Below, piece by piece: positions 2,869-58,046 of a DNA stretch of 64,000 nt; within the stretch, counting starts at the first letter, position 1, and each line of letters starts with the position of its first letter. The notes under the pieces were generated by a model. That model was not told where the DNA came from, searched no databases, and saw only the letters and a program-made list of their open reading frames with translations. Origin of the DNA: Adineta vaga (Eukaryota > Animalia > Rotifera); contig CP075494.1 in NCBI GenBank assembly GCA_021613535.1, positions 8,990,001 through 9,054,000 of the forward strand. The letters are read 5' to 3'. The position numbers and the translations under genes are program-made.

Positions 2869-5867
2869 TGAAAATATATATGAAAAAGAAAATGAAAGGA
2901 GCTTTCGTAGTATTGATTTTAAGGTATTATTCTTTGAAAGAAATACACGAAAGGCAAACAAGCCATTTTCAACTTATAGAAGAATTTTACTTGAATGACG
3001 AGTATACTGTTATTATTATTCTTTGTTTTTATTCTTCATTACCTTTTCAGTTCGAATATGAAAGGGAGTCTTTTTGAAAATAGATTTATCGGAAGTTGTG
3101 AAAGCGACAAAATTAAGCCATTGGTTTTAATGAAATATGATCAATGTCATCACTGCATCCACGTTGTTTCTGTTGGATTATGAATAAATATTATGATATA
3201 TATATGAGTCATGCAAGTTTGTATTGCTATCAGTAGGATGCACAGAAGCAATATATTTTATACTTCTATTTGTAATTTATGATGAAAAGAAAGAAAAAGA
3301 AGTAAAGCTTTTTATTTTTTATTACCTACATGGAAAACTATGTCTCCTGTATTGATAGCAAGAGAATCTTGTTTTATTTGACATATGATTTGCTCTTCGA
3401 TTCCTATACTCAAGTTTCATGAAATTAACTACTCTTTAGACGTCGTATATACATACAAGTGCTACGATATGTATTCTTGATAGAGAATATTAATGATTTA
3501 TAACGAAAAATGAAGATGAAATTATGTAACTCTACCACTACTCTTGACAATGATATTCTGTTCATGTCAATGTAAATGCATCGTTACATATACGAATACG
3601 AAGGACATGTACATAGGAAAGAACATTGTCGAAACAAAAGATATGAACAGATAGAAGGACGTGTATGTATACAATGTTAGTAGTGAGATTTTCCATAGGA
3701 AAAGTCCCAAAACAGTAGAAATGTGTCTCTAGGCTTATCAAACGGTAAAATTTCCAATTGAATTTGAGTTTGATAAAAAAAACTGATAGTATCTGTCATA
3801 TTATATTGAAGATGAATAGACTATCTTTGAAATCACACTAAGAAAAAGTACATATTGTTTTTTTTCATCTTCGTAATATTCATCAATATTTTCCACGTCT
3901 TTTATCATTTAAATTTCGATACGAAAACATATCTCAACGAATTTTATAGGCAAAAATATTGAAGCCAATCCTTTATAATGAGTACGATAACAATGTTTTA
4001 TTATATCTAAGAGAATTTTAATCATAATCACAAAATATGACACGTATGTCTCAAAATAATACCATGTCAAATTATCCGTCTTTTATTCATCAATATTTTT
4101 AGAGAAACGACATATAAAAAGAACGATTTTTCATTCGTTAATAATCGTTCTTGAGTGCACCTTGTTACCTCGAACGTTTCTTTGAGCATGAATTTATGCG
4201 TGCATGAAAGAATTAACAAAGTTTGACATATAATCTCTAGGAAATAGGCTTAGATAATCCTAAAGATAGTTTCTTCAATACAAACTTGATCATCTTTCTC
4301 AACGAAACAAACTACTCATATGATATATAATTCAGTTTAATCTAATTTCTTCTACCCAACGTCATACTGTTACAAGCTATCGAACAGATTACTTAAGTAT
4401 GAAACACACAAAATTTCTCAAGGACATTTAATGAATACACTCAAAGACTTTCGTATTGCATCAACTATATAATTAACATATTTAGTTCAATCAGTCTCTC
4501 ATTCAAATATAAGAATTTTCTTTTGCTGGATGCTTATCGTCTAGTAAAAATAGAATCTATTAACATATTTTCTAGGATTTTATCATAATAACAATGAATA
4601 TCAACAATCTTTCTAATCAAGAAAACTTCTAATCCTCAAGAGCATTCTGTCTTTCTTTTTTAGTATCTCAGTCAGTCCAATGCTTGATATGTATTCTCTA
4701 CGAATTACCATTTCAGTTTTGCATCCACCAATTTATTTTCATGAACTCTTTCGATAATAGTTCGTTGAACCAAAACTACGTCAACTTGTTGCATGTTTTA
4801 ATAATTAAATAAGCATTTGACTGGATATATTATGTATCTAGAAAAGTTTTTTTAATACTGTAACACCTTGAAGACTGCTTATATTTTCATAATACATTGT
4901 TATCTCGATAGTTTTTAATTTCAAATGCAAGTTCGGTAATTTAGCTGTTAGAGAGAAGTACTTTTCACCTTTTCTGTTATATATGTATATATATTCAAGT
5001 AAAATCATAACGGAAGAAAAATTCATTTCGAATAAAGAATGCTGATGATATATTATTTGAGTATGTTTTTGATTAATACCATCTGGCGACAGATAATCAG
5101 TAAGCAATTTTTGTCGCAACAATGTATTGAACTCGTGCAATTATAAGATCACTTGCTTTAGTTCTCTTTTACAGTTATATACATTAGAAAACAGAGAAAT
5201 TATTATTTTTTCTCATTTCACTCTTTCATATATTTTGAAATAGAGATTTCTCTTACGAAGACACTTATAAATTCAAGTAGGGGTTAAAATTATGTTGGAA
5301 CTATAATAAAAAAAAAGAAAAGAATGAGAAGAAGAGAAATACAACAGAGATTGTCATAGAAATTAGATGCTATGTCATAAAAAGAGAAAGAAAAATGAGA
5401 AGAATAAGTCAGATTCATTCTTTTTTTGACAATCGAGAGAAACTTCGGGCAAAGGTCATGTTATACACTTAGTTGCATTTGATAATTTTACTCATTGGCA
5501 TCATTTTAAATAATTCCTCTTATCTCAGAAGAAAGAAAAAACTAAATTTCCGAACTATTTTCATAGTTAGAAATAAAAAAAGAGAAGAAAAAAATACTTT
5601 AGTATAAATCATTGAAAGATATTTTCTATTCAGTTTTCATACATAAAATAAAGTCGTAGGCAACTATTAAAGTATATTCAATTAATATACTCAAAAGGAA
5701 ACACAATTTCTCCGACGAAGTCGTTACTAAAAGACGTCATTACGAATAGTATGAGATGCGAACATTAGTTCTTTAGCCATATTTCTTTTTATAGTAGCAT
5801 GTAATTATCGTTACACTGTTTGACATTACACAGAACTAGAGAAAACTCATCTATATTCTTTTCTAGA

Positions 5868-6972
5868 ATGCATCAAGTTCCGAATGAAACTATGAAACGT
5901 TTTTCTATTCCACCTTCAGCAATGCCAAGATTACCATCTGTAGACCATTCAGTTGGTCAACATCTTCTATGGATCAGTAGACAACAACAACAACATCCAT
6001 CACTTCATGCACATCCATTAAAGAATACGATACGAGTTAATTCACGTGGTACACGTTTTAAATTTGATGGCAAACAATGGCGACCTTTATGCCAATCAAC
6101 GGACGGATATGAATGTCGAAATCTAGCATTTCGATCCTCATTATGTCAAAAACATTTCTATAAAGTACATCTGTTCAAACGGCCATATATTCAAAAACCT
6201 ATCTCATCAACACAAATGCCAGCAATTCCACCGATATCACTCAAACGGCCATTACTAGTTGAATATGATGAATCCCAAGCAAAACAAGAAAAGAAAAGCA
6301 ATGAAGAATCGAAAGAAACAGATGAAGATGAGGATGATTTGATTGAAGTTATTGAAAATCATGATGTAAGTTGAATGAAAATAAAATACGTATCCTCTCA
6401 ATGATTATTTTCAGGCCATAGTCAGTAAATCAGAGTATAGATTTTTTTCAATTGATGATGAGCCACAAACAGTTATAAACACTTCAACCGCTCCGTTCAG
6501 TATTCGACCAGAAGGAGCAACTAAACGTTCAAATTCAATAACGACTGAATCTACAATGTCAAATGAATCTGAATCATTACATTCAATTTCATCAATTTCA
6601 AAGATAAATGAATCCATTCGTCTCGATGTTCCACCATTGACACGTACAGAAGAAAAATCTCTTGCAAATGAATTAATCACACAATTACCAGACGATGTTT
6701 CGTTAATAATTGGTGAACAAACAGCTCGACGACGTGTTTGTGAAATTGTGTTCGATAATTATTCTCAAAAACTTTTCTTAGAAAACATGTCATCCAATTG
6801 GTTTTATGATTTTCTTCTACGCAATCCGCGTGTACCGATACATTTTCAATCCTGGTTTTCTTCAGTCAAACCAACATTACCGAATTCAGATCATTTAGTC
6901 GATATCAAAATATGGGAACTCGGCCTTATTACCCGATCGTTTACACCATCCGCATCATCGTCGTCACCTTAA
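5868..6972 (+). CDS. Uncharacterised putative nuclear protein: Capicua-N1-like Cys/His motif, acidic linker, CENP-B-like HTH; at least two exons (intron ~6366-6414)
   Basis: ORFs 5820-6374 and 6556-6972 join through a GT..AG intron. Motifs FKFDGKQWRPLC..C..LCQKH and SSNWFYDFLLRNP. An acceptor AG lies just before the ATG, so an upstream exon is possible. Confidence 0.7.
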
Positions 6973-7006
6973 AAAAACGTATTTGTTGTTTTATTGTAAT
7001 TCTGTT

Positions 7007-48963: not shown

Positions 48964-50471
48964 ATGTCGTTAACAAAATTGCTACCTACGACTCATACAA
49001 ATGATGATGAAGACGAGGATGTCGAAGTTGGTTCGTCAGCTGTAAAACTTCATCGTTATACATGCGATACAAATACAGATTGGCCAACAAAAACAACTGA
49101 TATGTCAACATCAGCACCATTGACAACAGATACAACAGGTGTTGTTGTTAAAGATGTTGTACCACGTTCAATGTATTATCATGATCAAAATAATGATGAT
49201 GATTGTTTATGTACATGTGCATGTTGTCGTTGTGAATGTTGTCCAACTGTTTCTGACTGGTGTGTAAGAGATCCTTATGGTTTATCGTGTGGTTTTACAA
49301 CATGGTTTCTATTTGTCTATGCACAATTTGTTATTATTTTTGTTATATTAATACCTAAAAGTCATTCAACTTTATTCAATTTCGTTAATTTAATTATTTT
49401 TCATGCATTGGAAATTCTTGCCGTTTCATCACACTGGCGGACAATGTTTTCAAATCCAGTAGGTTTTATTCAGAAAAAATATTTTTCGACTAGCAAATTA
49501 TTCTTCTAGGGTACGGTTCCATTAAATAATGCAACTCCAGAAAATTTCTTAAAATATTCAAATGGTACCGTTATTTATCGATGTGCTATGTGTCAAAGTA
49601 TCAAACCACCACGAGCCCATCACTGTAGGTACTAAAACGTTAATTATGAATAATTTCTCATGCAAAAAGAAGGATAATTTAATCTGCTTTATATTTTCAG
49701 TGTTTGCAAACGATGTGTAAAACGAATGGATCATCATTGTGTCTTTGTGAATAATTGTGTTGGTCAAAATAATCAAAAATATTTTATTTTATTCACGGTA
49801 AGAAGATAGAAGATGCATCCGATGATATTTATCTATCTTTCTGGAATCTTTTATTACGGATCCCTGGATTTATGAGAGGTATCACCATGTCTCTTTTAAT
49901 GAGGAATAGAAACCCATCATTAATTATATGGGTTTTCAGAGAAAGAAAAAAAAGCATCATTCTATTTCAGTTCTATACGTGTATTATTTCGATCTATGCT
50001 CTTATTCTACTTGGTATTCATGTTACAACTTGTATACAAGCAGATTGGTCTGGTAAGTAAATTGAAATGAACTTTCTCATTTCTCTTTTTCCTCTTTATA
50101 AATTAGTATGTACAACATGGTCACCACCGGCTACAATAATATTCCTAATATTTCTTACCTTTGAAGCTATTTCATTCTCGCTATTTACAGGCATTATGAC
50201 TGGTACACAATTATATTCGATCTATACTGATACAACGGTATGTTCTTTTGTTTTTCAAAGAATAACTTCTTTTTTATGTATTCCTTGTTCTTTTTTCAAG
50301 GGTATTGAATCTTTTAAAGGCGAAGGAGGTCATCGTCGTCGTCATAGTTCATTTATATCTTCATTAAAAGTTGTCTTTGGTTCTCAGGTTGGCTTAGCAT
50401 GGCTCAATCCATTTACTAAACCAGTGAATTTAATAACGCAAAATGATGAACGTGTGACATTTGATGTCTAA
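48964..50471 (+). CDS. DHHC palmitoyltransferase, ZDHHC3/7-like; multi-exon
   Basis: [72 protein letters not shown] and WLNPF. Confidence 0.92.
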
Positions 50472-50695
50472 TTTCAGAATATACTGATAGAGTTGTCTCT
50501 TCTTTTTTCTGTCTTAATAATAAAAACAAAATCAAAATCACAAAACACCATCGAATTAAAACAAGAACAAGCACAACAACAAAACAGAGCGAATTTTTTT
50601 TTCTAGATGCTTTTTTTTTGAAATAATAAATCACGAATACAATATTTATAAATATATATGCATATATGTACGAAGAGATAAGGGCAATGTTTGTC

Positions 50696-53600
50696 TTATT
50701 TATCGTTTCCAATGCTATTTTCGATCTTTTTTAATGCATCAAATATGATACACATGTCACCTTTGAGATCAGATATGATTTGAGCAACATGTTGAGTATT
50801 GGAAACGACTTCAATACTTTGATTATATGGATTATAACGAACAGCAAATGGACGTTTAATAGATAAAGCAAAATCTCTGTAAAAATTGAAATAAAAATGT
50901 TCATTATTGATGAAAAAATAATTTACCTCATTTTTTCTTTAGCTTCAACAAAACTTGCCGAAACAAAATATTGATCTTGATACGTTGTAATTAAACATGT
51001 TGTTTTACAAACGACATCAGGATCAAATGTTAGTTTTTTTGCTTTATCACTCAATGCATGTTGTAATTCAGCACATGATGAAAGTAAACCAGCTCCATAA
51101 GCACGAAGACCATCACTTTGACGACATAAACCAAATTCAATTGTGAAAAAATAACACTAAATTAAAGTTATTCATAGCTATTTTTCGAAATTTCGAATCA
51201 GAATCTTTTCTTCCATATGTGTTATTCAATATTCATTTTTGTTTTCGAATATTTTCATATGTTATTCAAGTCTGATAGTTTCTATTAATGACATATTTTA
51301 AAAAATATTCGACGAGAAGAATAATAAACTGCGTCAGATGTGATTATGCATATTTTTTTTAATGGATTTTCATATGTTTCATTTCTATGTTTAGAACAGA
51401 TTGATTTCATAGTATTTTTATCGCGTAGCAAATGTCAAAGAGAACAAATATTGTCGTTGATCTAAGTCTAATGCACTGATTAGTTTAGAGTGCTATGTAA
51501 AAGCAATGACAGTTAAAGAGTAATCTTACCGTTGCCAAACGATTGATATCCTCTTCCGATGCACCAATAGCAGCCAAGCCAATTTCATGTGAAAATTGAG
51601 CAAAATTTGGATCTGCTAAGAGTGGTACATGACCCAATAATTCATGACAACAATCTCTATGAAACGAAACAAATCATATTTATTTGAAAAGCATAATGTC
51701 AAACGTACGGTTCTGGTGTATATGCTGGATTTGATGAATGTCGAATATATTGTGTGCAATGAAAAACACGAAATGCTAAACCATAGAGAAAATCTCTTGG
51801 TGATAAATATCCAGCAACGGGTCGTAATGTAAATCCAGTGCGTTCACGAAGAAAACGTGATATATCTTCTAATTGTGGAATATTATCCTCTCTAAATACG
51901 GTTTACTGTGATGAAAAGAATAATGAAATGAAATTTCATCTTACCGAAAACCACATTTTTCTCTTAATAATGGCCAATTTGCCAAATATTCATTACATGC
52001 ATGTGTGGGATAGATCTTATTTAGATTACGAAATACCGCACCCCTAAAGAAATTCAATGAAAACAATCTTGAAGTTTTTTACAACTCATCTTACCATGTT
52101 TCTGTTTCTTCTTTTGTATAGTCAACACGAGGAATTTGATCACCACTAAAGAAAATTCATTTCTTTTTAGACCATGAAAAACAATATTCAAAACTTACTG
52201 TTTATATGCAATAGCCACATCATGAAAGTACATACGACGAGCTCGATAAACTTGATCTGTAAAACCCTACAAATAGATTTGAATTTTACATCTTTCTTTC
52301 ACCTTTTTTAGCTTATCAGCTGCCGCACTAATTAGAAACCTAGTGAAACCTCGACAACTATGAATGTATTTTAAAGACAATTCAAATTTTCTTTCGTTAC
52401 ACTACTCTTAGGTTACAATAAACTTTCGTCATGCATTTTCTGGATGTTTCAATACATACTGGATGATCAGCATCAAGATCAGCTCCATATAGAAGTACTT
52501 TATTTGAACATTGATCTAAATCTTCGATACGATGTGGAAACCAAGGTGTTTCTTCGACTTCAACTAAAACGAGATATGAAAAAATTCATTTCTCTTCGAA
52601 ATATATGAGAAAATTTTTTTCCTGAAAAAAATAATAATATGGAACCATTTTTTCAACCTTTTCGTTGTTTTTGTTTTACTGAAGGTCTCTTCGGTTTTAT
52701 CTTCGGTTCTGAATCGCGTTTATGCTTTGAAACTAAATCAATATCACAACTATTTGCTCGTCCATAGTGTGGTTTAAATTCATTGGGATCTAAACTTTCA
52801 TGTACAGATGAGAAAAGTGATTGATTTCTTGGGTTTAATACTGCTGCTGGATACATCCATAAACCATCAGCACGTTTAACAACAATGGGGCCTGTTCTAC
52901 TTGATGTTGATTGATCCGAATATCTTCGACAGAAGGAAAATGATGGTATTTCCTGTTCATCATCTGTACTTAGATTATCATCAATCGAAACAAATGATGA
53001 TTCCATATCCGAACTTGTTGTGTCTATTATAGGCATAATAAAATTTGTGACGGGATTACGAATAAAACCCGTTACTGTTGCTACTGGATTAATGTTCATT
53101 TCAGTTGATGACCATGGTGATGATGATATTGAATCAATTAAAATCATTGGTGTTGATGGATATATCGATGGATTATGAGGACAAGATGTACGTAAACAAC
53201 ATTGATCAGCGAATGACAATGGAGATGTTGATGGTGATGGAATAGATGATGAAACTGAATAGAACTTATTCACAAGATTATGTAATAGAGTTAAATGATC
53301 TTTCAAATGAAGCATTTGTTTAGCAAGATTTGAAATTGAAAATGTTGGTGCTAGATCGAGTTTTTCAAGATTTTGTACACTACGAATCATATGAAGCCAA
53401 TCATTTGTGATAAATACTGGTAAATAAGAAAAGAATTGATTATTATATATCGTTTCCATGATTAATAATATTGCTGTTGTATCGATTAGATTGATTGAAC
53501 ATTGTTGTAAAATATCAAAGACTTCTTGATCTTTATTTAAATCTATCGTCGATAATGTATATTCCAAGCAATGTCGTAAATTATTCAAAGCTTGATTAAT

Positions 53601-55013
53601 TTGTTCGGATGAAAAATAACGTTTTAGATTATCTTCGATTTCAACTAATGAACCGTGACCAATAATATTCGATAAATAACATAAAACTCCATCATCGCAA
53701 ATTACAGATAAAGACAAATCACTTTTAACCGATATATACAAATGTCGATCAATCGCGTTTGTTACATGAGATGAAGACATATCCAAAGGATGTGTTGAGC
53801 AAGAGATTTCACTAGGTGATATCATCGTTATAGTTTTAATAATATTTATAGCACAAACGAAATACTACGGAGGAGATATCTCCTAAATATCACGTATATA
53901 TATATATGTGGAGTGAAAGAAACGACTGGTGCCTTAACGGCGCCATAGACAGAATATTAATTTTGACTTCCACTCGTTCTAATAGCTTTAAAGTGTAAAG
54001 ATGCAGAAAAACGACGTAAAAATAATCATTTGTCTGGCATACATTCCCAGTATGATTTTCTTCTTCTTCTTCATAAAAATTGAAGAAAACAATGAAACAA
54101 CTGTTATTGTTTTTGTTTTTATTTAGAATACACAGTTCAAAGTTCTATTGACACGTATATCAATAGGTTTCAATTCAAAAACAAATCAAGGGAATTTCTA
54201 TGTGTCTTATGTAAATAATTTGTTCTATAAACAATCATCAAATATGCTACCATAGATGGACTCTGTACTTGTTAAAAATAAGTACAGTCGTTCTTCGTAT
54301 GGTTGACTCTGGTGCAGAAAGATTTTCTACATCTGATGCCTTCTCATTTTTCGTTTGTGCTTACTTTTTCGTTTGATTGGTTCACCATTTTTATCAAGAA
54401 AAGGTGACGGAGGTGGTAATTCGAAATCTCCATTGTCATTTGAAGAACCATTATTGATAAAAACATCATCATTCAGTTTTTCCATATTCTCACTTAATTG
54501 GGAAATATTATTTAAATCAAATCGAACACAGGAAACTTGACGTTTTAATTGTTGCATTGATTCATGAAGATGATTACGATCAGCTTCTAAATCAACGTAA
54601 ATTTCATATTCCGAATCGGCACGACGTGAACGACGAGATTCAATATGTACGACATTAATACCATTTTCCTTTTTAGAAGAAAATAAAAAGGTCAATCCTA
54701 TCATCAGATCGTTTGTTTTTTTTTATAAAAGAATACCTGAAAAACTTGTAAAGCTCTTGCTAAACCTCCAATTCGATTTTTAATTGAAAATATAAATGAT
54801 GTTGTATTGCCTTGTCGTACAAGTGATTGTAATTTTTCCGGTGGTATATCATGATTAACAGCCGCTACTGCTTCTTGATCATCCATATCTTCATGTAATG
54901 TTGATAATCGATGCTAAATAGAAATTCAATTGTTAATTTCTTATTTCAATACATTACATTCGACTTTTTTCATTTACTTCAAGACATCGAAAATATGACG
55001 ATTTATACGACAT
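50696..55013 (-). CDS. TPH: Tryptophan hydroxylase (ACT plus catalytic domain); multi-exon
   Basis: ACT domain [30 protein letters not shown]. Catalytic motifs [16 protein letters not shown] and [23 protein letters not shown] and CYFFTIEFG match TPH rather than PAH (AGLLSSRDF/YWFT). Putative first exon [12 protein letters not shown] starts at 55013. Confidence 0.9.
52653..53825 (-). CDS. Intronless 390-aa ORF nested on the same strand in TPH intron 52564-54364; nested gene or alternative first exon
   Basis: 1173-nt open frame in very AT-rich DNA, with an ATG start and a TATA-like run about 70-80 nt upstream. Helical N-terminus, coiled coil and Ser/Pro-rich C-terminus. Confidence 0.8.
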   Translation of the reverse strand: MISPSEISCSTHPLDMSSSHVTNAIDRHLYISVKSDLSLSVICDDGVLCYLSNIIGHGSLVEIEDNLKRYFSSEQINQALNNLRHCLEYTLSTIDLNKDQEVFDILQQCSINLIDTTAILLIMETIYNNQFFSYLPVFITNDWLHMIRSVQNLEKLDLAPTFSISNLAKQMLHLKDHLTLLHNLVNKFYSVSSSIPSPSTSPLSFADQCCLRTSCPHNPSIYPSTPMILIDSISSSPWSSTEMNINPVATVTGFIRNPVTNFIMPIIDTTSSDMESSFVSIDDNLSTDDEQEIPSFSFCRRYSDQSTSSRTGPIVVKRADGLWMYPAAVLNPRNQSLFSSVHESLDPNEFKPHYGRANSCDIDLVSKHKRDSEPKIKPKRPSVKQKQRKG

Positions 55014-55686: not shown

Positions 55687-58046
55687 CTAAATCGGTCGGT
55701 ATGAATGAAAATCATTATAAAATATATCTGTTTCTAGTAATGATTGTTTAACATGCAAGTATTCAAAATCATAATCTAAAAAAGCTGTCTCATCTCCTTG
55801 ATGAGTCCATTCTGTAAAAAATACTATATGTCGATGATTTGGTGGAATACAATCTCGAGTTATAAAAGACTGACGAGAATTTTGTATAGATATTCCAGCA
55901 GCTAGATTCATATCAATATATAAATAATGTGTTCGAGATGTATTTTCTGCAATAAATATCGAAAAATCTGATTGTCGATGTGTTGTATAATAATTAAAAT
56001 ATTGATTCTAAATAGAAAATATAGAAAGAAATAAGTCATTCGAAGAAAACTGAATGACCTAACTTGGTGTAGTTTATGGTTTTGTTTTAAAATGATGACA
56101 ATAATACAATCAGTTAAAATTGTTGCGGGTTCATTAATAAGTTGAATATCGAGTTGAAATTTTGAATGTATCACTAAAGTATAATCTCGTTGCAAGTCAA
56201 CATATTTCTCATTCCAGAAAGTTGTTGAAAATGGAATAAGAATATAATAACCAGGATTTAATAAACCTGACCAATGTGTTAATGAATGACGACCGGCTTT
56301 TATGATAGAAACATGTGTACCAATAGTTTTCATTTGTCTACCTTTTACATCACATAAAACAAAGAATTGTGTATGATAACATGGTATATGACGACTTTGA
56401 CGATGATATATTAGACTAGTAGTAATTGGTGATCTTCTAAAAGACGATAGAAATAGTTGAAAATGTATAAACATTCTATTACTTATGACAGTTAAGATCG
56501 AGAAGGAAAACTTCTGACTCCGATCTTATTCATAAGAATATTTTGCTTTATTACTGACATTTTAAAGAGTATATTCACTGTCTATTTCCGTGAGTTTTCT
56601 TTGTTAGGAAAATATTGATTAACATCTTACTGTGGTACATAGAAATGAAACGCTGGAATTGGTTCCTTTGATGATTGAGTAAATTGAGCGACTTGTCGTA
56701 CATCATAATAGTCACTAATATATGATGATATTGTAATAGAAGCAAAAAATTGAAGAAAGACTGGCCATGAAATCCAAAAAGCACCCGACGATAGATGACT
56801 TCGAAGGAAAGAATTTAACTGAACAAGAATTATCGGTGTTATCAGTGGTTCACGATAATCCGTCGTGGCATGTGGGTCACGAACTAGTACAAATCGCATG
56901 GAATTAGTTGGTAGAGTGTGTGCAGCAAGAATAGAAAATACATGATTAGTATTAATATGTGCATGATTATATTCATTTTCACTAACGTCAGTTCGACCAG
57001 TAGCTGCACCAATCAATAATCTAGAAAGAAAGAATTCATAATCAAAAGAATATATTAGAGAATAAATTTGCATACTGAAATTCACAAGCTGATAGAAGTT
57101 TTGCCCAAATAAGATCACTATTAAATTCCTCATCTTGTGAATTAATAATAATACGATCACATGGTGCACCTGTTAATAATTGTAGACCTTCTTCAGCATG
57201 TCCACCACATAATTCTGCATAGGAACCAAATAATTTAGCACATGCCTTTTCAATTAATGGAACATATAATTGACAACGATTTGCTTGTGAATATGCTAAT
57301 TGATTGTATTTTGTACATGGAAAACAATCATCAACAATCACTGTTTTCCAGAGACCATTGTGACAAATACGTATAAGATAAATACCTTCTTCATTGACTT
57401 GTTTTGTTAATACAATTCGTTCGAGAATTTTCGGTTGTTCAGCAATTAAAGTCAATGCTGCCAACAACCAACAATCACCAAGTATTCCTTGTTGAATATC
57501 ACTCGGTGATGGTGAAGAATATACAGTCCAAGTTAATTGTTGATCTTTTCGTAATGAAAATGAACATATTTGAGAAATTCTTAACCATTGAAGAGAGTGA
57601 TCCGTCAGATCACCAATCGAACGAAATGATGGAAGAAATTGATCATCGACAAAATGTATTTTAGTCTATAGAAAACAACTATGAAACCAAGAAACAACTT
57701 CCTATGAGAATTACTGTTCGACAATATGAAAGAATATCATTAAAGAGTTTTTCTGATGCATCAAGTTCATCTTTATGATAATGATCAAGAACAACGGATG
57801 TCGAAGTTGTCCTCCTCAATTGATTGCCATTAGTATCCTTGCGAAAGAATCAAAATAGTTTATACGTTTTTTTTCTTTTGTAAAGTTATATTTTACCGAT
57901 ATTGGTTCGTTTTCATTTACTTGTGGATCAATCTCCTCACATACTTCACATTTCGGATAAATTGATACTGGATTGAAAAACGTACATACCTTACATGACC
58001 ATCGATTCGAATCTGTACATGTTTGACTCATTAACATACTAATCAT
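55687..58046 (-). CDS. Calpain-15/SOL-like protease (RanBP2 zinc finger, CysPc, SOH-like domain); multi-exon
   Basis: WSCKVCTFFN...CEVC; IQQGILGDCWLLAAL; RICHNGLWKTVIVDDCFP; LYVPLIEKACAKLFGSY; EGLQLLTGAPC; HVFSIL; GAFWIS. Confidence 0.9.

Follow-up and report, generated by a model that had tools for sequence, protein, structure and literature searches.

Besides their catalytic domain, aromatic amino acid hydroxylases possess an oligomerisation helix and an ACT regulatory domain, and regulation through the latter and the N-terminal tail is central to monoamine biology. The tryptophan hydroxylase (TPH) gene of the rotifer Adineta vaga carries, between its ACT and catalytic exons, an unusually long intron with an open reading frame on the same strand. 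Is this frame a separate gene nested in the intron, or a first exon that takes the place of the ACT domain? We analysed a window of 64,000 nucleotides around it (GenBank GCA_021613535.1, contig CP075494.1, positions 8,990,001 to 9,054,000); coordinates below are those of the window. The best explanation, to which we assign a probability of roughly 0.88, is a TPH gene in which two promoters give rise to mutually exclusive 5′ ends, both of phase 1, that share the acceptor at 52564/52563. The canonical parts of the gene are as follows, with the basis of each assignment in brackets and splice sites marked by a slash.

50696–54886, minus strand: coding extent of the TPH gene (open reading frames and sequence).
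54737–54886, minus strand: canonical exon 1, with the ATG at 54886 and the N-terminal part of the ACT regulatory region (open reading frame, sequence).
54365–54668, minus strand: canonical exon 2, with the ACT domain, an RRADS site and the phase-1 donor A/GTAAGC (Pfam, RNA contigs).
54329–54341, minus strand: conserved intronic element AGGCATCAGATGT of 11–13 nt, enclosing an E-box-like CAGATG, just 3′ of the ACT donor (sequence comparison).
52564–54364, minus strand: phase-1 intron of 1,801 nt (donor AAA A/GTAAGC, acceptor TTTTAG/TT).
52460–52563, minus strand: first shared exon, start of the catalytic domain (RNA joints; Biopterin_H positions 1–36).
50696–52266, minus strand: the seven other shared exons, which encode the catalytic domain and C-terminal helix, with the stop at 50696–50698 (RNA joints with GT..AG ends; PF00351).

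The enzyme was identified by searching the window exons singly, while full-length comparisons draw on database proteins of relatives. Exon by exon, PF00351 matches span model positions 1–330 at the window locus. TIGR01270 (tryptophan 5-monooxygenase) gives the best score for each of the four exons tested, none of which reaches the whole-protein cut-off alone, and the nearest named relatives of the catalytic exons are vertebrate and mollusc TPH1/TPH2 (66–69% identity). The shared-exon translations contain HELLGH and FTIEFG together with the TPH-type YFF motif; from family knowledge, HELLGH..E presumably supplies the iron ligands of the 2-His-1-carboxylate site. Canonical exon 2 searched alone matches the Pfam ACT family (E=2e-4). 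Both canonical exons are single-copy in the genome, and exon 1 is joined in RNA contigs (54736 to 54667) and is 84–88% identical in loci L007–L009 of other bdelloids. Element AGGCATCAGATGT is 100% identical over 11–13 nt at the equivalent place in L007, L008 and L009.

Within the long intron, the frame in question, termed here the module, comprises the following features.

53926–53946, minus strand: promoter-proximal motif ATGGCGCCGTTAAGGCACCAG of 18–20 nt (conserved across loci).
53893–53908, minus strand: TATA-like AT-alternating run, 12–25 nt downstream of the motif (sequence).
53826–53863, minus strand: 5′ UTR of the module transcript with an approximate start site (RNA contig ends at 53862/53863).
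52653–53825, minus strand, as TPH: module open reading frame of 390 codons plus stop, ending CAA CGA AAA G/GT TGA.
53253–53771, minus strand: module residues ~19–191, predicted folded helical domain (AlphaFold2).
52658–53252, minus strand: module residues 192–389, predicted disordered tail ending in the first base of a split Val codon (pLDDT <50).
52564–52657, minus strand: 94-nt intron of the module isoform, with weak donor GTTGAA and the acceptor of the canonical intron (RNA contigs, conservation).

Most of this arrangement had been described in an earlier note made from the letters alone, and it holds up in the sequence. The 1.8-kb intron with its same-strand 390-codon frame is as described and far above the usual length, the other eight TPH introns measuring 50–68 nt except for two of 193 and 373 nt. 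The TATA-like run, the 89-nt gap between the module stop and the TPH acceptor, and the phase-1 donor (GT at 52657–52656) whose 94-nt intron gives an in-frame join were likewise recovered, the splice leaving a split Val codon at the junction. The donor is weak, as had been noted: it alone begins GTT, against GTA in all nine others. The open frame itself (403 codons) far exceeds chance; 2000 shuffles of the intron gave a mean longest run of 69 codons and a maximum of 164, and the composition-based probability is ~2e-14.

Expression was followed in assembled contigs of three public runs (X1, X2 and X8) rather than in raw reads; since the contigs are without introns, we took the runs to be RNA, which is a guess at their type. 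The 1236-nt contig X2 record 10 matches 52658–53221 with letters 1–564, and the 322 letters that follow agree in number with the total length of the four exons lying between 52563 and 51945 (105+67+52+98). Its depth, 7.93, recurs at each joint of those exons, and it goes on over 51709–51891, 51530–51656 and 40 nt more. X1 record 5 and X8 record 18 end exactly at 52658 on one side (with a 30-nt overhang in X8) and at 53862/53863, without overhang, on the other. The arithmetic of the X2 contig together with these ends places the 52658-to-52563 junction between module and catalytic exons, which the earlier note had predicted, in RNA. The canonical form is present as well: X1 record 6 and X8 record 19 contain the spliced ACT exons and a 30-nt overhang past 54365 that maps elsewhere, so ACT exon 2 is spliced. 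With the ACT exons on some contigs and the module junction on others, the data indicate expression of both 5′ ends. Another contig of 1210 nt, diverged in sequence (X8 record 17), matches catalytic as well as module parts, which a fused transcript of the ohnologous TPH copy on contig C2 would explain.

Upstream of the module, motif ATGGCGCCGTTAAGGCACCAG is the best conserved block between the ACT donor and the module ATG. It occurs once per locus, ~96–120 nt upstream of that ATG in the window, L007, L008, L009 and L011; in the C2 ohnolog it stands at −226. Its 18-mer occurs nowhere else in the 100.8-Mb genome at ≤1 mismatch, which marks it as a locus-specific footprint and not a common site; a genome-wide regulatory site was rejected on this ground. 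TATATA(A) stands at the equivalent place in L007, L008, L009 and the C2 ohnolog. The RNA contig ends at 53862/53863 fall ~30 nt past the TATA run, with the proviso that assembled contigs cannot prove a 5′ end.

The same arrangement recurs across bdelloids. The order of both ACT exons, module and catalytic exons is kept in L007, L008 and L009; L010, whose contig begins within ACT exon 2, shows that exon, the module and the catalytic exons, and L011 the module and catalytic exons. The C2 ohnolog encodes a 370-aa module (44–47% identity, no stops) with the donor AAAAG/GTATGA, a 47-nt intron and the acceptor AG/TT, in the same phase as in the window. ACT exons are found neither at C2 nor elsewhere in the genome beyond the window locus. 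Eight loci (the window, its ohnolog and six loci of other bdelloids) keep the in-phase G/GT donor, the acceptor and the Val codon that their joining creates, a conservation that the earlier note had proposed to check; 7/8 read G/GTT. Unnamed fusions of module and catalytic domain are already present as models in public databases for five bdelloid species: Adineta ricciae (714 aa), A. steineri (724 aa), and Rotaria sordida, R. sp. Silwood1 and R. sp. Silwood2 (727–728 aa). One fused relative, P0023, matches Biopterin_H with 550 bits over residues 384–713. The canonical spliced isoform of a relative, P0054, which has PF01842, reads ..KRK-I-EAEETPWFP across the corresponding joint.

These data bear directly on the reading of the module as a same-strand nested gene, which would make a free 390-residue protein, the splice into TPH being mere noise or a product of faulty assembly or annotation. 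A 154-nt contig that keeps the 94-nt intron (X1 record 4), the weak GTT donor, a stop 1–28 codons past the donor in all loci, and many module-only ORFs in databases would fit such a gene, although the last derive from prokaryote-style callers on unspliced DNA. The nested gene is nevertheless improbable, because the spliced contig spans the module into seven catalytic exons, the phase and Val codon are conserved, C2 has an intron of typical length with a consensus donor, and fused models of 714–728 aa exist in five species. In all loci seen, moreover, the module adjoins catalytic exons, and this holds for the ohnolog too, although its ACT exons are gone. The nested-gene alternative raised in the earlier note thus fails as the main reading and survives as a minor extra product: the intron-retained form, seen in one run, would be translated into the 390-aa module alone, so that the module exon may yield more than the fusion. 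An internal cassette exon, giving a single protein in which the module lies between ACT and catalytic domains and ACT is not replaced, has in its favour the partial Rotaria sp. Silwood1 model P0013, which passes from ACT exon 2 into the module. P0013, however, runs through the ACT donor (..KRQ-SK..), as is typical of automated read-through. In the window, an in-frame stop at 53865–53867 precedes the module ATG by 13 codons, no AG acceptor of the required phase was found upstream of that ATG, the RNA contigs are unbroken through the exon and stop at 53862/53863 without overhang, and the conserved motif and TATA run directly precede the module. We rejected the cassette for want of a phase-compatible acceptor and because of this stop, and regard it as highly improbable.

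A further proposal concerns where the module came from and is compatible with the fusion: that it is the domesticated N-terminus of a LINE (CR1/L2) ORF1. The helical, coiled-coil-like character of residues 45–190 is all that speaks for it. AlphaFold2 predicts residues ~45–135 with pLDDT 87–97 in two independent runs, but searches with the module point to no such ancestry. No Pfam family recurs among 24 module members and no transposon family appears, the genome holds only two module copies, both at TPH loci, and a profile search of 5.8 billion proteins returned nothing between E 1e-79 and 0.01. Structure searches gave generic helical bundles at most: Foldseek against the PDB found nothing at E ≤0.001, the best hit of VIA-align wide was RbcX at Z 5.9, and the ESM Atlas gave TM ≤0.25 by shape and no usable match by features. 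A PDB profile search yielded a single chance match (E 0.23). The LINE origin was dropped on copy number, profile search and Pfam, and we give it next to no credence. The module is found only in bdelloid rotifers, with no Pfam, PDB or structural relative found.

The preferred reading, a second TPH isoform with the module as its N-terminus, is also reflected in the constraint on the module. Across 24 sequences it has 23 invariant columns, and its disordered tail retains the invariant motifs QCCLxxxCxH, an acidic SSDDE, VKRxDxLWxYP, RxNS and a basic tail (23–24 sequences). pN is below pS in 28/28 pairs, a qualitative result, for in most pairs the synonymous sites are either saturated or skewed by an AT-rich choice of codons; dN/dS was therefore dropped and only the direction of the difference used. 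Judged by these sequence comparisons, the module form is kept under selection across the bdelloid lineage. A fused A. ricciae protein, P0051, which is without one short exon, was predicted by AlphaFold2 from a mixed alignment with a mean pLDDT of 50, the catalytic domain being poor too, a model uninformative on module docking.

We propose that the upstream promoter would give the canonical enzyme, with ACT regulatory domain, catalytic domain and C-terminal helix, and that an internal promoter within the 1.8-kb intron, comprising motif ATGGCGCCGTTAAGGCACCAG and the TATA run, would start a 1.2-kb first exon. That exon would encode the 389-residue bdelloid-specific module, a helical domain followed by a long, motif-rich disordered tail, and removal of the 94-nt intron would join it to the catalytic exons. 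The product would be an ACT-less TPH, ~730 residues long, whose altered N-terminus would serve in regulation or targeting, much as the earlier note had supposed; RNA, the conserved splice, public models, and the promoter motif and TATA run all support this. Pfam finds no ACT domain in the module, and the predicted fold is helical and not beta-alpha-beta-beta-alpha-beta, so that the module form is a TPH by its catalytic core and not by canonical domain architecture. Since all catalytic exons are shared and intact, the fusion protein is presumably active. We infer that the module replaces ACT-type control (amino-acid binding, stability) by its own fold and conserved motifs, with the RxxS, acidic-serine and Cys/His motifs possibly acting through phosphorylation, partner binding or localisation.

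The upstream isoform resembles canonical animal TPH1/TPH2 (TIGR01270, PF00351 plus PF01842) in its usual ACT N-terminus, RRxxS site and C-terminal helix; the second isoform departs from them in swapping ACT for the 389-residue module, and is the sole form of one ohnolog. Bacterial single-domain phenylalanine hydroxylases (TIGR01267) likewise work without ACT, but they are monomeric and lack an N-terminal module, whereas the rotifer form has the animal C-terminal helix and a large new N-terminus. Tyrosine hydroxylase of human and Drosophila is alternatively spliced in its regulatory region, and the variants known among aromatic amino acid hydroxylases gain or lose short stretches. In our literature search we met no case in which an orphan module takes the place of an entire regulatory domain. 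TPH2 and tyrosine hydroxylase carry disordered, phosphorylated tails ahead of the ACT domain (bioRxiv 10.1101/2022.09.20.508773; PMC8748767). The rotifer module shares with these a long disordered N-terminal stretch with basic-x-x-Ser and acidic-Ser motifs before the catalytic domain, which by analogy suggests regulation by phosphorylation or partner binding. Those tails are added to ACT, however, while in the rotifer form ACT is absent and the tail of ~200 residues comes after a helical domain of its own; in sequence, no similarity between the two was detected. The arrangement also fits the general class of N-terminal proteoforms from alternative promoters (reviewed in PMC13082882): two promoters and first exons, a common acceptor of the same phase, and a change in the N-terminus only.

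It is probable that the orphan module replaces ACT through the conserved internal promoter, with one ohnolog module-only, and that serotonin or downstream indoleamine synthesis is therefore under a mode of regulation or localisation unknown in other animals. The swap would be lineage-wide and affect the rate-limiting serotonin enzyme, with its own conserved promoter and one duplicate gene fully committed to it. On this reading the module TPH would be a natural experiment on the need for the ACT domain, and the module exon would illustrate the capture of an orphan coding exon as an alternative first exon. Of the two copies left by an ancient genome duplication, that on C5 retained both forms and that on C2 only the module form, a clean case of subfunctionalisation.

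The duplicates also bear on the weak donor. Its conservation might, more tentatively, spare the strong ACT donor competition in long pre-mRNAs, with a degree of intron retention as the price, an argument that rests on one strong-donor case, C2. Relaxation of the weak donor after ACT loss is kept as a low-confidence idea only, being based on that single locus and because GTT persists in L012, which is likewise of the C2 type. Weak splicing of the 94-nt intron may also yield the free module as an additional product.

The window carries on its minus strand an aromatic amino acid hydroxylase gene, one of four Biopterin_H loci that form two pairs in the genome (C5/C2 and C3/C6). All four window exons tested score highest with TIGR01270, the TPH equivalog, with the PAH and TH models below it. 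In its catalytic part, the Adineta steineri relative shares 66–69% identity with named vertebrate and mollusc TPH1/TPH2; the nearest named proteins are those of A. ricciae and A. steineri. The canonical form joins two ACT exons to the catalytic exons; an ACT-less form joins the catalytic exons to a module encoded within the long intron.

Features of the gene as read from the window sequence (in splice sites, a slash marks the exon–intron border)
54737–54886, minus strand: 5' coding exon 1, canonical form
54365–54668, minus strand: 5' coding exon 2, Pfam ACT match
52564–54364, minus strand: long intron, 1801 nt, donor AAA A/GTAAGC in phase 1, acceptor TTTTAG/TT
54329–54341, minus strand: 13-nt element AGGCATCAGATGT, 24–36 nt downstream of the ACT-exon donor
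53926–53946, minus strand: putative promoter motif, by conserved sequence
53893–53908, minus strand: AT run (TATA), by sequence
52653–53825, minus strand, the same as TPH: module ORF, 390 codons, ending CAA CGA AAA G/GT TGA
Down to the stop at 50696–50698, minus strand: eight catalytic and C-terminal exons, by sequence

The earlier note had described a 1.8-kb intron holding a same-strand 390-codon ORF with a phase-1 GT and a 94-nt intron, all of which are present: the GT lies at 52657–52656, and removal of the 94-nt intron would join the module in frame to the catalytic exons. The open frame spans 403 codons; across 2000 shufflings of the intron sequence, the corresponding mean was 69 and the maximum 164. 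The module donor (GTTGAA), rightly called weak, is the only one in the gene to start with GTT, the other 9/9 starting with GTA. A simple ACT–module reading frame is excluded: a stop closes the frame 13 codons before the ATG, and no AG lies in the right phase.

Transcription was assessed in assembled contigs of four public sequencing runs (X1, X2, X8 and X5). None of the runs is catalogued as RNA, but the contigs lack the TPH introns at GT..AG borders, from which we infer that they derive from RNA. These contigs reveal two transcribed 5' ends and one shared acceptor. The 52658-to-52563 junction proposed earlier as a check is found in X2 record 10 (1236 nt, depth 7.93), by length arithmetic rather than from a listed joint. 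Its letters 1–564 lie on 52658–53221 and letters 887–1196 on 51709–51891 and 51530–51656; the 322 intervening letters equal the summed four exons between 52563 and 51945 (105+67+52+98), and the depth of 7.93 recurs at every joint of those exons, indicating that the contig goes straight from 52658 to 52563. X1 record 5 and X8 record 18 agree, both starting exactly at 52658 and extending to 53862 and 53863, respectively; the latter has a 30-nt overhang, as a branch into a shared exon gives in a k=31 graph. In X1 record 6 and X8 record 19 the two ACT exons are spliced to each other. Both records end at 54365, and because the 30 nt overhanging this position do not match the neighbouring intron, the canonical 5' end is also expressed and spliced.

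The 154-nt X1 record 4 runs unbroken across 52536–52687, with two additional A at 52578 that reflect either a homopolymer or an allelic difference, and the 94-nt intron is thus retained in some RNA, which would encode a free 390-residue module. Depth over 53853–54364 is almost nil, which makes genomic DNA or canonical pre-mRNA an unlikely origin of this contig. The weak GTT donor could account for the retained-intron RNA and may also limit competition with the ACT donor in the long pre-mRNA.

The internal promoter suggested in the earlier note is consistent with a conserved footprint upstream of the module ATG. The motif ATGGCG(T/C)CG(T/A)T..GGCACCAG is common to five loci, ~96–120 nt before the ATG, with a TATA box 12–25 nt further on; in the C2 ohnolog a similar sequence, CGCCGTCACGGCA, occurs with TATATA at −226. 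The motif occurs once in the genome, and the RNA contigs stop at 53862/3, ~30 nt beyond the TATA run. In a blastn-short comparison of the window with L008, a TPH locus of another bdelloid, the stretch from the ACT donor to the module ATG yields only three aligned blocks: the putative promoter motif at 53926–53946, one surrounding the presumed start (TAGGAGATATCT) and AGGCATCAGATGT. The last is 100% conserved over 11–13 nt in L007, L008 and L009, includes an E-box-like CAGATG, and is a possible intronic enhancer or splicing element.

Protein collections of 5.8 and 1.8 billion entries yielded only ~35 relatives of the module, every named one bdelloid, and no profile match between E 1e-79 and 0.01. 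Unnamed, automated full-length models join the module to Biopterin_H in A. ricciae (P0051, 714 aa, junction tail the same as the window's), A. steineri (P0023, 724 aa, junction ..IKHIK-V-EAEETPWFP), Rotaria sordida (P0047, 727 aa), R. sp. Silwood2 (P0048, 727 aa) and R. sp. Silwood1 (P0049, 728 aa). The short 17-residue exon is missing from P0051. P0054 (515 aa, ACT and Biopterin_H, junction ..KRK-I-EAEETPWFP) stems from a spliced transcript of the canonical form in an Adineta-like species. Among bdelloid loci, L007, L008 and L009 share the order ACT exon 1, ACT exon 2, module ORF and catalytic exons; L010, whose contig begins within ACT exon 2, continues with module and catalytic exons, and L011 and L012 contain the latter two. 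On the conservation of the ORF end and GT, which the earlier note proposed as a check, every locus carries an in-frame donor (AAA or CGA, then G/GT) whose G combines with TT or TC into Val. The donor is GTT in 7/8 loci and GTA only in the A. vaga C2 copy; module-form introns measure 47–126 nt, and the nearly universal ..KG terminus of module ORFs is the donor read as a codon. By comparison of these loci, splice phase and gene architecture are conserved. Two public automated models, P0013 (Rotaria sp. Silwood1, partial) and P0009, read through the ACT donor or the module intron, illustrating how the locus misleads gene predictors.

The genome contains exactly two module copies, the second in the C2 TPH gene (L003, G000:C2:10168000-10177999, 4242–6994, minus strand), directly upstream of the catalytic exons. 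This ORF encodes 370 residues without stops, 44–47% identical to the window module; the catalytic exons are 82–98% identical, except one short exon (55%) and the C-terminal exon (61%). The module ends AAA GGA AAA G/GTATGA, followed by a 47-nt intron and AG/TT GCA ACA GAA GAA. Phase and Val codon are as in the window, whereas the donor is consensus and the intron of usual bdelloid length. No second copy of either ACT exon was found near this gene or anywhere in the genome, making it a module-only TPH. X8 record 17, a diverged spliced contig of 1210 nt, matches both catalytic exons and module segments of the window, the pattern that a fused transcript from C2 would give. After duplication, the C5 copy probably retained the two forms and the C2 copy a single one, which looks like subfunctionalisation following bdelloid genome duplication. 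A C2-type module subfamily (L003, P0026 and P0031) lacks the R-x-x-S..QP segment, indicating that the split into two module types predates several speciations.

No Pfam family matched the window module and none recurred among 24 members; no relative turned up in PDB sequences, among solved folds or in the ESM Atlas. AlphaFold2 with 23 homologues predicted a helical domain at residues ~45–135 (pLDDT 87–95), helices to ~191, and pLDDT < 50 for residues 194–390; the helical domain came out again when the full-length A. ricciae protein was modelled, a run that was otherwise uninformative. Most invariant columns fall in the low-confidence half of the module (Q208-C-C-L..C215.H217, S236..S239, R256-N-.V..F262, R318..W323..P326, R356..S359), a pattern typical of short linear motifs or a small metal site. 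The invariant Q-C-C-L-x-x-x-C-x-H (residues 208–217, window 53208–53177), within predicted disorder, is a candidate for a small site that binds metal or responds to redox state. Sequence change is much faster in the module than in the catalytic part (identity 26–56% vs 82–100%); nonsynonymous differences are fewer than synonymous ones in 28/28 pairs, a qualitative comparison only, as synonymous sites are largely saturated.

Since all catalytic exons are used, the module form is probably an active TPH. It would escape ACT-type control, with regulation or placement possibly exerted through the module, by analogy with the TPH2 regulatory domain and the TH tail (bioRxiv 10.1101/2022.09.20.508773; PMC8748767). 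Full-text literature on TPH in bdelloids or rotifers, alternative-promoter TPH isoforms and hydroxylases with unusual N-termini yielded no description of this architecture; the fused proteins are represented solely by the unnamed automated models.

The upstream neighbour (55687–57169, minus strand) looks calpain-like, with a weak Peptidase_C2 match (E 0.003), and calpain genes also lie upstream of TPH in L008. On the other side, the neighbour (49300–50471, plus strand) is convergent with TPH at its 3' end, and with 50300–50601 covered by RNA contigs the 3' UTRs may overlap.
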